Under the pieces are notes generated by a model. The model was given only the letters and a program-made list of their open reading frames with translations, had not been told where the DNA came from and made no database searches. This document shows positions 81 through 43,477 of a stretch of 64,000 bases of DNA, in pieces. Source of the stretch: Oikopleura dioica (taxonomy: Eukaryota; Animalia; Chordata); the NCBI GenBank assembly GCA_907165135.1, contig OU015568.1, positions 6,572,001 to 6,636,000 on the forward strand, read 5' to 3'. The translations under genes and the position numbers were made by a program. The first letter of the stretch is position 1; each line of letters begins with the position of its first letter.

Positions 81-206
81 TGACACCCTTATTTTCTGGG
101 CTCGTCAAACAGTGTAGAAAACCTGAGTCAGGTTCGGAAGAGCTTTCTTCAGAAGCTGGCTCAGATTTTCGAAACAGGTTGATGAGCCCAGAAAATAAGG
201 GTGTCA
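81..206. mobile_element. Family-A palindromic MITE-like copy 1 (short) with extra TGACACCCTTATTTT arms
   Basis: TGACACCCTTATTTTCTGGGCTC..AAAACCTGAGTCAGG..GAGCCCAGAAAATAAGGGTGTCA. Confidence 0.75.
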
Positions 207-470
207 GTACGTTAACTCAAAATTCATTCACCCCGAAGAACCGTAAACTTGTCGGTAATTACTTTAATTATTGAGTTTCTATGTCAATTTTAATTGATTT
301 AGCAGCGTTTTCAATTCATCGCGTCTAAGTGTCAATGAAATTGAAGCTGCTGTTATGATGATAACTTTGAGTAATCAGCGACCTTTTGATGATATTCAAT
401 TCAATATCGAGTTCGCCAGAACATGACGTGGCGAATTCTAAAAAAATAACGATGGTTGAACCAGTTTCAG

Positions 471-608
471 GCGCACGCAGATGGAAATGTCGAAGGTTTT
501 CTTGACCCAAACGACTTTTCGTATCCGGCAATCAACCCCGAAACCGGCGAAATCGAAAATGTTCAAGTCAGTGGCAGCGAACTCGGCGAAAATTCAGCGC
601 TCTACTAG
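471..608 (+). CDS. Probable terminal exon of an unidentified gene
   Basis: TTTCAG acceptor then open frame AHADGNVEGFLDPNDFSYPAINPETGEIENVQVSGSELGENSALY*. A 43-nt GT..AG segment (428-470) precedes it. No recognisable family. Confidence 0.35.
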   Translation, partial: AHADGNVEGFLDPNDFSYPAINPETGEIENVQVSGSELGENSALY

Positions 609-936
609 CTGAAAATTAAATTATTACGTTCTACTGCACCTTTCTTTTTCAACTTGTACAGTTTTTATTATATTTTCGCCGAAGTGAGGAGAAAAATGGC
701 CGCCGCTCGAACGTAATTTAATGAGTTCGTGAAAATATACGCCCACAGCTCGGTGGGTATTGCGACGACTCATTGGATTTGACAGTCGGATGATCGGATG
801 TGAGATAATTTCGCCGATTCCGACTGTTGATCAAACAGATTAAATAATTTAAAATTCTACGATCATCATCATCTTTCTTTAGTCTATGCACAAGATGTTC
901 TCGTATAAGGTCCAAGAATGTCATTAAAATTTCGAA

Positions 937-1353
937 AATTCGATATCTATTCAGTAATAAAAATTGAGTTAAAGAAACCAATAGGGTTTAAGAATTTAGT
1001 GTGCTGATTATTAAATTCTTTATAGGCGGAACTCGAAAATTTACGACTGTATCTTTACTATAACAAACGCTGTATCTATTGAAAACTCATTATATGGAGA
1101 ATCTGTGAACCACAAAAGCCCTGGTTAAAGTCGGCAATCTTCGGAAAGCCCTGTCGATTCTGAAACGCCCTTCATTTTTGGAAAACACCACTGAGTTTCC
1201 AATAGATACAGCGTTTGTTATTAGTAAAGATACAGTCGTAAATTTTCAAGAACGCAAGTTTCGCCCATAATGAATTTGATAATCAACGCACTTAATTCTT
1301 TAACCGGATTTGTTTCTTTAACTCGATTTCTATTACTGAATAGATATCGAATT
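937..1353. mobile_element. ~415-bp foldback/MITE-like palindrome
   Basis: Arms of roughly 150 bp: AATTCGATATCTATTCAGTAATA../..TATTACTGAATAGATATCGAATT, plus inner AATAGATACAGCGTTTGTTA / TAACAAACGCTGTATCTATT. Confidence 0.8.
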
Positions 1354-1532
1354 AGCGACATCGATTCAAATTCTCCTCATGACGCCCCGCTGCCGCAATT
1401 CGCCAAGACAATAAATAAACATCAACCTTTACATTTGTTATTTTGTCTCGCCATATTTCTTGAAATCGAATCTCCTAATAAATATGTTTTACATCTCCCA
1501 ACACGCAACCACCAAAAATGAAACAAATTTAG

Positions 1533-39900: not shown

Positions 39901-41356
39901 AAACTTGGAGAAATCCATTGAAATCCCGAATCCGCCATCAACAACGATGCTCCAAATGCATTTAGTGTTCGGTGAATAATAATCAATTCCTGTTGGATAA
40001 TCAATCACTCCACTAGATTCTTCAATGTCTCCACCGCATTGTCCAGCAGGCAAGTTGCAAATTTTACCCGTCCAGTCATCGGGACAAGTGCATCTGAAAT
40101 CAGTTCCGCCGTTGATAGTCTCGCACTCTGCATTATGAAAACAAGGGTTGGGTTTGCAAGGATCGCCTCGTTCGTCACAGTGAGTTCCCGCCCAGCCTTG
40201 GTAGCAGATACAGACAGGGGAGCCGTTCTGAATGAGACAGACTCCATTGTTGCATTCAAGATTGCAGTCGATTGGGTCTGGCCCAGGTCCATCAGCTTTG
40301 CATCCATCCGGGCCAATACCATTTCCAGAGTAGCCATGACCGCATTTACAAGAGAACTCGCCGTTGTTGTCGGTACAAGTAGCAAATGGGGAACAAGGGT
40401 TACTATCGCAAGCAGAGTGTTTTCTGCAAAATCGTCCGTCACCTTCATATCCATTCGGACACTCGCCACAACTGGTTCCAGTCGAAGATTTGCGACAAGA
40501 AACTTTTGGATTTTGGCTGCAGCCACCATTGTTAATGCTACAGTAATCGACGGATTCACATGCGACGCCATTTCCTGCCATTCCAGTTGGGCAAGCTCCG
40601 CAGCTGTAGGATCCAATGTTGTCAATGCAGTCAACTCCTGGGTAGCACAAGTGCGCTCCAGTTGCACACTCGTCGATATTTTCGCAAGTCTTTTTGTTCT
40701 CATCGTATTCGAATCCTTTTTGGCAGATGCAGGAGTACTTAGCTGTGCCAGGATGAGTTCTGACTCCGTCCACGCAAAAACCATGTGGGCCACATTCATC
40801 TCCTTTCGGACAATCGTCATGTTTTGACTCGCAATGAGTTCCGTAAAATTCCGCTGGGCAGGTGCATGAAAATCTCTCCGGCGGTTTCGAATTAAAACAA
40901 GTCCCACCGTTCAAGCAAGTGTAAACGCCATGGTCAGTGCATTCGTTGTAGTCGTCCTGGCAGGTAGATCCGGTCCAGCCGTGAGCGCACTGGCAGCTGA
41001 AGCCGGTATTGCCACTGATGCAAGTTGCTCCGTTGTGGCAGTTGTTCGAAGAGCAATGATTGACTTTGAGGCCATCGACATCGCTGTTTAGCTGGTCGAT
41101 GTCTTCTGCGACTTGGGCGAAATCTTTGTTGTTGATCAGAACCGTCCCTGTCTGTTTTTACAGTTAGATAATAGATTTCGATTTCTGAAAGAAAAAAACT
41201 TTGCTAACTTCCCTGATCAGTAACAAATAAAATATCCTTGCCATTGCCAGGTTCAAATCGAAGGTTGCCATTGACAGAATTGACTCTTGGCTGCGAATCA
41301 AGCTGCGCTAGAATCGGATTTAAAACGAGAATGAAGAGCCTTTTCAAGCGCTTCAT
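27948..41356 (-). CDS. CUBN: Cubilin orthologue: signal peptide, N-terminal stalk, 8 EGF and 27 CUB domains, with two domain insertions
   Basis: MKRLKRLFILVLNPILAQLDSQPRVNSVNGNLRF resembles the cubilin N-terminus. A manual count gives 8 EGF repeats and 27 CUB domains when the split CUB25 is counted once. The giant exon is 30796-41151, and the stop follows GFKINWYQKV. Confidence 0.92.
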
Positions 41357-41479
41357 TTATGATAATTATTTCTCTTTTTTGAGAAGAGTGAAATTAGAAG
41401 CGAGCGCATCAGTGTTAGTGCTGCACTGCTAAATACAAATAGAAAATGCGTGAACATGCTTTATCATTATTCAATAAAA

Positions 41480-42250
41480 TCACCATTCGAAGGTGATTTT
41501 TCCCAGCTCTGCAGTCGTGACGGTCGACAACACGGAGAGCACTTTCAAGGCAAGTTTGTGGTCCCGCTTGTCCTCAAGCTCGATGTAGGCGAAGCTCTGT
41601 TGAGTTTTGACGTGAAGAGCGACTTTCAATTCCAAAAAAAGGCCCTTGACTCCGTTGTCGACCAGAATCTTCTTGATCGAATCCGCTTGCACGCCGTTTG
41701 GAACGCCACTAATCCAGATGCCGTTCTTGACTCCAGTCGCTGGAGATGCAGCCCCAGCTTCATTCTCAGCGTTTTCGGCCGGCTCTTCTTCTTCATCCAA
41801 GTCCTCCGCCGGTGAGCTTTGATCAACATTCATCGGAACAGGAACGTGTCCTAGAAAATCATCAGCTATTACGATCCCTTTTCTTTTTTATTTACCAGGG
41901 TCTTCTTCGGTCATTTCCGCGACCACATTTTCATCTTCATTTGCCGCAAGCATCTTTTGTTCTTTGGCTCGGGCTAAACGAAATGAAGCTTTCGATAAAA
42001 CGATGATGACTCCTACCTTTGCATCCCTTATTTCCACGATGCTGCAGCATCCTATACTTTTCGCGGAATGCATGGCCACAGATATCGCAGGCAAAGGGCT
42101 TTTCTCCACTATGGATCATCTGATGTCTTGCCATGTCGCGTCCCGCCCGAAACTTCTTTCCACAGGTGGAGCACTGAAAAAATTGTTTCTGAGATCTCTC
42201 AGTCTCGTGTCTACCTCTTCCATGATTTTTCCCATATCTCTACTGTAGAA
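41480..42250 (-). CDS. Two C2H2 zinc fingers + acidic linker + C-terminal RRM-like domain (5' end unresolved; may include 42283-42612)
   Basis: CSTCGKKFRAGRDMARHQMIH-SGEKP-FACDICGHAFREKYRMLQH, spliced in frame to ..GIWISGVPNGV..QSFAYIELED (RNP2/RNP1-like). Confidence 0.7.
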
Positions 42251-42949
42251 AAACAAAATTTCAAAAAATAATTTAAGCGGAGATGAATCCGCTTGATCGC
42301 CGGTTCCAGCGAGATGTCTCCGAACGAGGAGTCATTTGAATCTAGAAAGAAGAAGATCCAAATTTTATGGTTTTCAGATTAAAAAAAATCAAGAAAAAAC
42401 TTGACGTTTCTTTCCTCTTCCGAAAAGCTTCGAAATGTACATCCGAATTGATCAAAAGGCTGAACTCGCCTAAAACCAACTGATTCGTTCATTTTCTTCT
42501 GTAATGTCATAAAAGCTGAACCCCGGAACCCGCCAAACTCAAATCCTTTTGGCATTTCCTCGCGATCTGGCTTGGAAAATTCACTCTTCACAGCTTCAAA
42601 AATATAAGACAATGTCTACCTCTTCAGAGAAAAGCGCCTTCAACTACAGTAAGCAATGAAATAAAGTTCTTTCTATTAAGACTTAGAAATTAAGACATAT
42701 TCGAGTCGCTGTCAGACAGAATAATAATCCTACTGCAGATCACTTGCATCCTGCAAATCATGTTTCTGATTTTCTACTGCTCTAGAACTTATACCAATAA
42801 AAGATAGCCTGCATTTTATGATCAATTATTTCGAAAAGAAAGTCAGAAGAAAAGAGGCTTCCTTCATCAATTTTTGATTTCAAGAATGTCTAATTTTATT
42901 TGTCAAAATCGGTGTGTTGTATTGCACTAGAATTGAAAGCAGGCGATAG

Positions 42950-43477
42950 TTATCCGACGATGATGTTGTTGATCGGAATGTGAATCAGCTTGACGAAGTA
43001 GCCGATGAAGCCCATAATCAGGAAGCCAATTGCTAGAAAGATGAATGAAAAAAGGGAAAAAGCGAGTTAGAAATCAAGGAAGAGAATATTGAAATTTGTC
43101 TAAATTTCTTACCGGTGGCAAAGGCGATCTTTTGGAATTCTTTCTTGTCGGGCTTGGTCGATCTTCGAACGAATCTGAAATTTTGGGTTAAATATTGAAC
43201 CTAAAATGGGATACTCTTAATCTTTATCCCTTTGGCAAGGCTTTGAAACCTGTGTAGAAACCCTGAGTCAGGGTGCTGAATGAGCTTTGATTAAAGCCGC
43301 GCAGCGGCTATCTTCAAAACGAAGCCTCTCTGCGGATTTAACCAAAGTTCTTTTCAGTTCCTGACTCAGGGTGCCGAGCTCTGTGCACCCCTTTAAAAGT
43401 TATATACTGTTACGGTACCTCATCGCGTCTTTCATGTAGACCTTTGCAGGATCGATAACTTGCTCCATCATATCCAT
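42950..43477 (-). CDS. SEC61G: Protein translocon subunit Sec61 gamma
   Basis: Three exons: [67 protein letters not shown]. Confidence 0.97.
43239..43380. mobile_element. Family-A copy 17 (SEC61G intron 1)
   Basis: AACCTGTGTAGAAACCCTGAGTCAGG..AAGCCGCGCAGCGGCT..CCTGACTCAGG..GCCGAGC. Confidence 0.8.

Follow-up and report, generated by a model that had tools for sequence, protein, structure and literature searches.

How can a mobile element spread through a genome, come to differ from copy to copy, and still have two arms that resemble each other within each copy? This question is raised by a 64,000-nucleotide stretch of Oikopleura dioica DNA (OKI2018_I69, the Okinawa assembly; PAR chromosome record OU015568.1, positions 6,572,001–6,636,000), hereafter the window, in which a short palindromic element occurs 17 times. 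A preliminary description of this DNA had reported that the two arms co-vary within each copy and that no direct target-site duplication (TSD) surrounds the copies. It offered two alternatives, fold-back synthesis or arm-to-arm conversion on the one hand and many symmetric subfamilies on the other, and suggested that the propagation mechanism may be undescribed. Our results make it probable that the copies are a family of non-autonomous cut-and-paste DNA transposons (miniature inverted-repeat transposable elements, MITEs) of O. dioica, which were symmetric at the source and decayed afterwards.

The family itself is real. Motif counts over the window gave 23 occurrences of the CCTGASTCAGG box and 27 of a GC-rich hairpin module, AAGCCGC-NNN-GCGGCTT, against 0.01 expected for each, and a scan with a half-element profile returned 34 arms, which form 17 convergent pairs, plus one solo arm. 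All arms lie within 97–26357 and 43239–43375, with 16 pairs in the first 26.4 kb and one at 43.2 kb. Read from the outside inward, an arm consists of a 37-nt terminal inverted repeat (CTGGGCTCGGCAACCTGTGTAGAAAACCTGAGTCAGG), which opens with CTGGGCTCGGCAAC and closes with the palindromic box CCTGAGTCAGG, then a spacer of ~21 nt, whose sequence is near GTCTGAAAGAGCTTTAATGAA when the copies are read side by side, and finally zero to two GC modules. The two arms are joined by a short unique centre, and each element is a near-complete palindrome. The terminal repeat was detected in 34 arms of the 17 copies, which are 77–303 bp long and thus within the size of MITEs (less than about 600 bp). The copies contain no conserved open reading frame (ORF), and a word search for spurious ORFs in the other copies, using a 62-aa ORF read from inside copy 10, gave no candidate. 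Folded as single strands, copy 10 (−113 kcal/mol, z = −22.6) and copy 14 (−75.5 kcal/mol, z = −18.1) form hairpins that are nearly perfect. The copies, the solo arm and a related palindrome are as follows.

96–191: copy 1, a short form without hairpin modules, set flush in the centre of another palindrome (22–265); no TSD.
1754–1950: copy 2, with the 8-bp TSD CTTTCGAT at 1746–1753 and 1951–1958; the inner left arm is replaced by unrelated sequence, and the copy lies 23 nt downstream of an apparent GTAAGG splice donor (a reading of the sequence; no gene is annotated there).
4400–4547: copy 3, with the TSD ACTAAAAG (4392–4399) / AATAAAAG (4548–4555) and one GC hairpin at the symmetry centre.
8844–8920: copy 4, a short form with degenerate termini.
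8954–9025 (−): solo right-type arm, which adjoins copy 4 and has two hairpin modules (8954–8970 and 8982–8998).
9643–9827: copy 5; no TSD.
10183–10299: copy 6, a short form; no TSD.
11083–11256: copy 7, whose two arms agree throughout the inner 29 nt of their terminal repeat; no TSD.
12277–12389: copy 8, a short form set flush in the centre of another palindrome (12180–12472); no TSD.
15318–15554: related palindrome with arms 99% complementary, whose central GC-hairpin modules are common with copy 13; it lacks the TGAGTCA box.
15908–16106: copy 9, with the 8-bp TSD TTCTTAAC at 15900–15907 and 16107–16114 and strongly asymmetric arms.
17497–17728: copy 10, with two hairpin modules per arm and a 14-nt deletion between AACCTG repeats in the right arm.
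18316–18559: copy 11, with two hairpin modules per arm and a degenerate left terminus.
22614–22856: copy 12, in an intron of a TLC-domain gene, 14 nt from a GTAAGT donor; present in the Tara Oceans orthologue L004.
23219–23521: copy 13, in an intron of the TLC-domain gene, with the left terminal repeat missing; present in L004.
24089–24256: copy 14, whose arms match perfectly over 46 nt and both have a swapped box centre; the left terminus is missing.
24641–24744: copy 15, an intronic short form with one central degenerate hairpin; no TSD.
26085–26358: copy 16, in which each arm has two hairpin modules; the flanks CTGGATCG and CTGGAGTC agree at 5/8 positions.
43239–43383: copy 17, beyond the start of the cubilin gene; its right arm has the AACCTG-bounded deletion that is also seen in copy 10.

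Are the two arms of a copy more alike than arms drawn from different copies? In the spacer they are. The mean spacer distance was 0.28 between own arms compared with 0.48 to the arms of other copies, a difference that none of 10,000 permutations reached (p < 1e-4), and over all 120 copy pairs the quartet site patterns that group arms by copy numbered 622, compared with 111 and 115 for the two alternatives. The co-variation is only partial, however, since own arms diverge by 28–30% on average and, in a tree of the arms, partner arms are sisters in only 5–6 of 16 copies. When the arm was divided into segments, identity was 0.67 between own arms versus 0.58 between arms of different copies at terminal positions 1–10, 0.74 versus 0.71 at positions 11–26, 0.94 versus 0.92 in the box, 0.72 versus 0.50 in the spacer, and 0.70 versus 0.66 in hairpin 1. 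The excess identity of own arms is confined to the spacer; the terminal repeat, the box and the GC modules are the same family-wide. These values are the expectation for a symmetric source followed by ~15% independent decay in each arm, with sources that were alike except in the spacer.

The strings that the preliminary description quoted for copies 10, 11 and 14 are exact, and so are its observations that each of copies 10 and 11 has two mismatches between its own arms and that the box centre of copy 14 is swapped in both arms at once; the perfect arm match of copy 14 exists as well, although it extends over 46 nt and not the 36 given. Only four states were private to both arms of a single copy, compared with a control mean of 1.3. 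Most of the mirrored variants instead define groups of copies: AGATCTTT occurs in copies 3 and 14 and in the right arm of copy 2, GGCTCT is common to copies 10 and 11, and GGGTCC is common to copies 8, 12 and 16. With at least 7–8 spacer types among the 17 copies, clades such as copy 3/copy 14/right arm of copy 2 and copy 10/copy 11 can be seen in the tree and the alignment. That the mirrored states are mostly common to several copies indicates that the family is made up of symmetric subfamilies.

How did the copies reach their present sites? The conserved end begins 3 nt outside the GGCTCGGCAAC from which the preliminary description had started, at CTGGGCTCGG. Measured from this end, flush 8-bp direct duplications were found in 3 of the 11 copies that retain both termini (copy 2, 8/8; copy 9, 8/8; copy 3, 7/8), and none of 110 non-cognate flank pairs reached 7/8, even when a shift of ±1 was allowed; the statement that there is no direct TSD was therefore wrong. 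Duplications sought at offsets up to ±6 gave nothing above the controls. Flush duplications of this kind indicate that, in part of the family, a DDE transposase carried out staggered cut-and-paste integration, and at least some copies were integrated by an 8-bp staggered cut. The sites CTTTCGAT and TTCTTAAC fit nTnnnnAn, which is the target pattern of hAT transposons of the Ac/Hermes type, and ACTAAAAG/AATAAAAG fits at position 7 only; the first two give 5 of 6 diagnostic positions together with the third, a fit that is suggestive at n = 3. Our best guess is consequently that the family is hAT-like, a candidate assignment made on the TSD only. The inverted flanks that had been reported are present as long inversions (about 75–100 nt per side) in copies 1 and 8 only, whereas the supposed flank of 2–3 bp elsewhere belongs to the terminal repeat.

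Copies 2 and 9, whose TSDs are perfect, have the least symmetric arms of all, with 33–35% divergence over the outer 60 nt. Had all of this divergence accumulated at the present site, only 3–4% of cases per copy should still show an unaltered TSD (8/8); thus, both copies were probably already asymmetric when they were inserted. The fact that the perfect-TSD copies are the least symmetric indicates that insertion does not rebuild one arm from the other.

Could the arms instead be homogenized after insertion, at the resident site? Orthologous copies from a second population bear directly on this point. The exon ORF beside copy 12, which encodes a TLC domain, led to a 10-member protein cluster from marine metagenomes, one member of which (P0126) is identical over the exon and is encoded on a 642-bp Tara Oceans scaffold, L004. 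When this scaffold was aligned to 22757–23396 of the window, identity was 99.0% over the exon and 94.9% over plain intron, compared with 91.5% for copy 13 and 89.1% for copy 12, so that the MITE arms are 8.5–11% diverged between the populations compared with 1% in the exon. As both copies are present in both populations, the two insertions are older than the population split. In three-way site patterns, copy 12 gave 10 sites that join the orthologous arms against the other arm, 3 that join both window arms against the Tara arm, and 4 that join the Tara arm and the other arm against the window arm. The corresponding counts for copy 13 were 31, 5 and 6, of which the 31 is inflated because the comparison passes the symmetry centre, where the arms are not homologous. 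The informative point is that the last two classes are balanced (3 versus 4, and 5 versus 6). In the tree, the Tara arms are sisters of the orthologous window arms, and the changes that followed the split are one-sided, two of them breaking hairpin 2 of copy 12. The comparison of filled orthologous sites that had been suggested thus shows arms that group by side across populations and change independently: resident copies 12 and 13 decay arm by arm, there is no arm-to-arm conversion at these sites, and their stems bear no sign of purifying selection.

The orthologue of this gene in another O. dioica lineage (L003; 84–87% exon identity, short introns) lacks copies 12–15, and copies 12 and 13 are present in the close Tara population; the elements are thus present in one lineage and absent in another. 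No box, terminus or hairpin motif was found in the TLC locus of L003 (4.5 kb) or in the cubilin locus of the Bergen lineage (L002, 16.7 kb), and, since the introns of both do not align with those of the window, there is no clean empty site to read. The JGI metagenome contigs contained no match to a 23-nt terminal-repeat pattern or to a double-hairpin pattern. We also observed that both ends of L004 fall inside palindromic copies (13 and 12). Short-read metagenome assemblies will break at these elements, and this hides the elements from metagenome-based surveys.

What could then keep the sources symmetric? A transposase supplied in trans would bind the terminal repeat and the GC modules, and, judging from the 8-bp TSD and the nTnnnnAn-type targets, a hAT-like enzyme is the best guess for it. 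hAT elements need subterminal sites far inside their ends, and those bound by the BED domain of Hermes are quasi-palindromic AAG(T/C) repeats; in the present family, the GC modules consist of inverted AAGC pairs. Spacer symmetry would arise in active source lineages and not at resident sites, most likely through strand switching between complementary arms during resynthesis of the donor after excision or, alternatively, through quasi-palindrome correction during replication, and selection for two equivalent ends would probably reinforce it. Template switching creates and maintains hairpin symmetry (PMC8794818, PMC5453318, PMC3820800). Slippage or microhomology-bounded deletion between the repeated modules may have produced the short forms and the forms with one, two and four hairpins. 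Of the two alternatives offered at the outset, the shared mirrored states, the TSDs and the decay of copies 12 and 13 favour symmetric subfamilies, and fold-back synthesis or arm conversion is less favoured. An undescribed propagation mechanism is not supported, as an ordinary MITE with TSDs suffices and the family requires no new mode of DNA propagation.

Three further observations concern the modules and the box. From the terminus inward, the loops of the GC modules are mostly GNA triplets (GTA, GAA, GCA) closed by C:G, for example at 17555–17599, 18373–18417 and 22669–22713, and the complementary TNC loops occupy the other half of each strand; the DNA mini-hairpin d(GCGAAGC), which is unusually stable, has a GNA loop with C:G closure as well. 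At arm positions 27–37, the TGAGTCA box (a palindrome of the AP-1/bZIP type) has a between-arm identity of 0.94 compared with 0.72–0.74 in its neighbours, and this conservation could be due to ascertainment (the copies were first found via the box), low mutability or selection after insertion. The same 14-nt deletion between two AACCTG repeats occurred independently in the right arms of copies 10 and 17 (17700–17728; 43360–43383); it is bounded by microhomology, as expected from slippage or from microhomology-mediated end joining (MMEJ).

Several observations weigh against a cut-and-paste family with symmetric sources. Seven of the 11 copies with both termini have no TSD, though their outer arms are ~80% alike. 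The termini read CTRRG (CTGGG, CTAGG or CTGAG), with T at position 2, and not A as in the hAT terminal consensus, 5'-YARNG. A transposase domain was absent from the 10 ORFs scanned, which lie in 2.3–29.5 kb of the window, and no autonomous copy was found in the window. The process that keeps the sources symmetric is one that we infer, the box may seem conserved in part because of the way in which the copies were detected, and the data comprise 17 copies and two orthologous arms. Some copies also fit poorly. Copies 10, 11, 13 and 17 are damaged at one terminus, while their inner arms match well; in copy 7, five mismatches among the outer 10 nt of the terminal repeat adjoin 29 inner bases that are identical; copy 14 combines the loss of one terminus with its 46-nt perfect match and with a 4-nt insertion that is mirrored in both arms and creates a local inverted repeat, TCTGAA-T-TTCAGA. 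Copies 1 and 8 sit flush in the centres of palindromes, with flanks that are inverted and not direct. These host palindromes are discrete and have sharp ends, and their arms are about as alike as those of the elements inside them (82% versus 77% for copy 1; 92%, without an indel, versus 89% for copy 8). Copies 1, 8 and 14 fit local self-templated synthesis better than simple decay. The ill-fitting minority as a whole possibly reflects error-prone repair of abortive end cleavage or occasional self-templated synthesis.

These poorly fitting copies speak for fold-back (snap-back) synthesis, in which a 3' strand from a break at or within a copy would fold on the palindrome or on a GC mini-hairpin and copy the other arm, sometimes with the flank; elements made or rebuilt in this way would have perfectly mirrored arms and inverted flanks. 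The palindrome-centred copies with zero TSD, the inner match of copy 14 with its templated-looking insertion and missing end, and the one-sided damage of copies 7, 10, 11, 13 and 17 all agree with it, as do the symmetry centres of copies 3 and 13 and of the 15318–15554 palindrome, which coincide with the loop of a GC hairpin. The setting agrees as well, because O. dioica, having lost classical non-homologous end joining (NHEJ), relies on MMEJ to mend breaks, and the polymerase of that pathway produces templated insertions. Even so, we regard fold-back synthesis as an unlikely origin of the family. The flush TSDs of copies 2, 3 and 9 require staggered integration, the perfect-TSD copies are the least symmetric, and orthologous copies 12 and 13 have undergone no conversion since the populations split. 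Recopying of a whole arm would leave a pattern other than the one observed, in which neither the terminal repeat nor hairpin 1 shows an own-arm excess; templated insertions made by this route are usually shorter than 25 bp, and dispersal to unlinked sites is not explained by fold-back alone. A broader proposal is that polymerase-theta-type snap-back repair of breaks caused by the transposase or by palindrome fragility recurrently rebuilds the arms and sometimes copies the flank, so that palindromic MITEs would be partly a product of the host's repair deficit. To this we likewise assign a low probability. If true, it would explain the TSD-less copies, the position of copies 1 and 8 in palindrome centres, the damaged termini of copies 7, 11 and 14, the mirrored insertion of copy 14 and the unusual density of unrelated full-length palindromes in the region. 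For copies 1 and 8, the idea that classical NHEJ captured an excised element at a break in a palindrome centre was dropped as a lead, since O. dioica lacks that pathway.

Might each symmetric subfamily instead have been born once, by inverted duplication of one end of a different autonomous element or of the dissimilar left and right ends of such an element, with recent birth and amplification and no maintenance? The co-variation of one segment only, with the presumed binding modules constant, is consistent with such births, as are the natural dissimilarity of hAT ends beyond the terminal repeat and the documented extension of Galileo terminal repeats by inverted duplication of internal sequence. 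The spacer variants, however, form a graded series of point variants of one sequence rather than unrelated sequences, and their number would demand many independent births; there is no autonomous element for comparison. Single births therefore appear improbable to us. Locus-level selection on a hairpin function (a hairpin or small-RNA precursor, intron structure, or cruciform or bZIP-type sites), with compensatory substitutions, seems much less probable again. The folds are very stable, as the z scores show, several copies are intronic and near splice donors, and the box is far better kept than its surroundings. On the other hand, the orthologous arms gain unmirrored changes, including those that break hairpin 2 of copy 12, and they diverge faster than the neighbouring intron; own arms are on average as divergent as described above, many copies are truncated, no Rfam family matches, and the sites are absent from other O. 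dioica lineages. Finally, nothing specific suggests that the palindromes are artefacts of the Nanopore-based assembly. Palindromes can be mis-assembled, and short-read contigs break inside them, but an independent Illumina-based Tara Oceans scaffold has the same arms of copies 12 and 13 at the orthologous site, and the copies differ among themselves as well as in their flanks and TSDs, so the chance of an artefact is negligible. We therefore retain the cut-and-paste family with symmetric sources as the probable explanation.

The region in which the family resides is itself rich in palindromes. At least five other full-length palindromes, described as unrelated to the family, lie in the first 26 kb (929–1361, 3570–3871, 6752–6988, 7507–7935 and 15318–15554; arms 74–99% complementary), making the region a dense field of palindromic MITE-like elements. 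The 929–1361 palindrome has a possible 9-bp TSD (ATTAAAATT/ATTCAAATT). The 7507–7935 element and the host palindrome of copy 8 (12180–12472) both begin with TCTAAA(A)CG and end with …TAGA, and a single transposase may serve both. There are 7 occurrences of the motif TGACACCCTTATTTT versus 0.18 expected; it directly flanks copy 1 and is a repeated subterminal motif of the 7507 element. G+C content is 36–44% in the element-rich first 28 kb compared with 39–50% in the gene-dense rest, and 16 of the 17 copies lie in the low-GC part.

Among the genes, a TLC-domain gene (21900–25081, minus strand, 260 aa) has four of the copies (12–15) in its introns, and its intervals measure 232–549 bp in the window compared with 20–271 bp in L003; much of the larger intron size in the Okinawa-type lineage is due to the elements. 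The cubilin gene (27948–42235, minus strand; annotated product of 4465 aa) contains an uninterrupted exon ORF of 3386 aa (30754–40914) with 21 CUB stretches and EGF domains, which is 100% identical to the annotated O. dioica OKI2018_I69 protein. Its best Bergen-lineage match (P0002, annotated as partial and covering 30% of the query) has 85% protein identity, and the downstream neighbour genes differ. Scans of the window for tRNA genes and Rfam families found none.

What does the family add to the picture of this genome? In the published repeat annotation of the Okinawa genome, MITE-Hunter was used and 44% of the predicted repeats were unclassified; O. dioica papers mention MITEs only as a class, and no description of this family was found in the O. 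dioica literature searched, a search that lay outside Dfam and Repbase. With 16 copies in 26 kb, the family is a concrete piece of that unclassified 44%, and, having defined ends and a defined TSD, it can be annotated now. The enlargement of introns in one cryptic lineage and not in others provides a marker of lineage divergence in an extremely scrambled genome. Furthermore, the copies without TSDs and those in palindrome centres offer a testable handle on transposon and palindrome breaks in a genome without classical end joining.

How does the family compare with known systems? The nearest are hAT-type MITEs and elements of the Foldback/Galileo type. Foldback-type elements (Drosophila FB, Galileo of the P superfamily, and Tetris) likewise consist almost entirely of arm with repeated modules, their arm length varies through module gain and loss, and chimeric or extended arms are known among them. 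Their arms, however, are tandem repeats of hundreds to thousands of bp with unrelated termini, and the candidate was rejected because the arms here are 40–130 nt long and have no more than two hairpin modules, with a TSD of 8 bp; that of Galileo is 7 bp and that of FB 9 bp. A Helitron- or Helentron-derived element (HINE, DINE-1-like), which would have asymmetric ends, a single subterminal 3' hairpin and no TSD, was rejected on the symmetric ends, the hairpins in both arms and the presence of TSDs. A precedent for the idea in the preliminary description is the hairpin-intermediate model that Izsvák and colleagues reportedly put forward in 1999 for the zebrafish Angel elements, in which a palindromic MITE is amplified with the participation of its own fold-back structure. 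The idea is the same, and its status is that of a model rather than of a demonstrated mechanism; in the present family, a hairpin intermediate as the main route is disfavoured by the TSDs and by the independent decay of resident arms.

The quasi-palindrome template switch of the Ripley model (PMC5453318, PMC8794818, PMC3820800) is similar in that a single event perfects an imperfect inverted repeat and produces apparent mirrored changes and small inverted insertions such as that of copy 14. It differs in being a general mutational process, not a mobile family, and no such event was found in copies 12 and 13. Introner-type MITEs, which create introns (Huff et al. 2016), are resembled in that several copies are intronic, 14–23 nt from donors, in an aquatic eukaryote with fast intron turnover. 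An introner would itself supply or create the splice sites of its intron, and this candidate was rejected, since the donors GTAAGT (14 nt from copy 12) and GTAAGG (23 nt from copy 2) lie outside the elements and the intron that holds copy 12 exists in a short form, without the element, in L003. With the hAT MITEs, for which Hermes, Ac and Tol2 are the reference enzymes and whose superfamily is marked by a transposase with a BED finger, an RNase-H-like DDE core and a hAT dimerisation domain, the differences are the CTRRG termini, the near-complete palindrome in place of the normally dissimilar hAT ends, and the lack of a recognizable TSD in most copies. The likenesses are an 8-bp TSD (in 3 of the 11 copies), targets two of which suggest nTnnnnAn, a small, non-coding, multicopy element, and a short terminal repeat combined with repeated quasi-palindromic subterminal AAGC motifs that resemble the BED-type site of Hermes.

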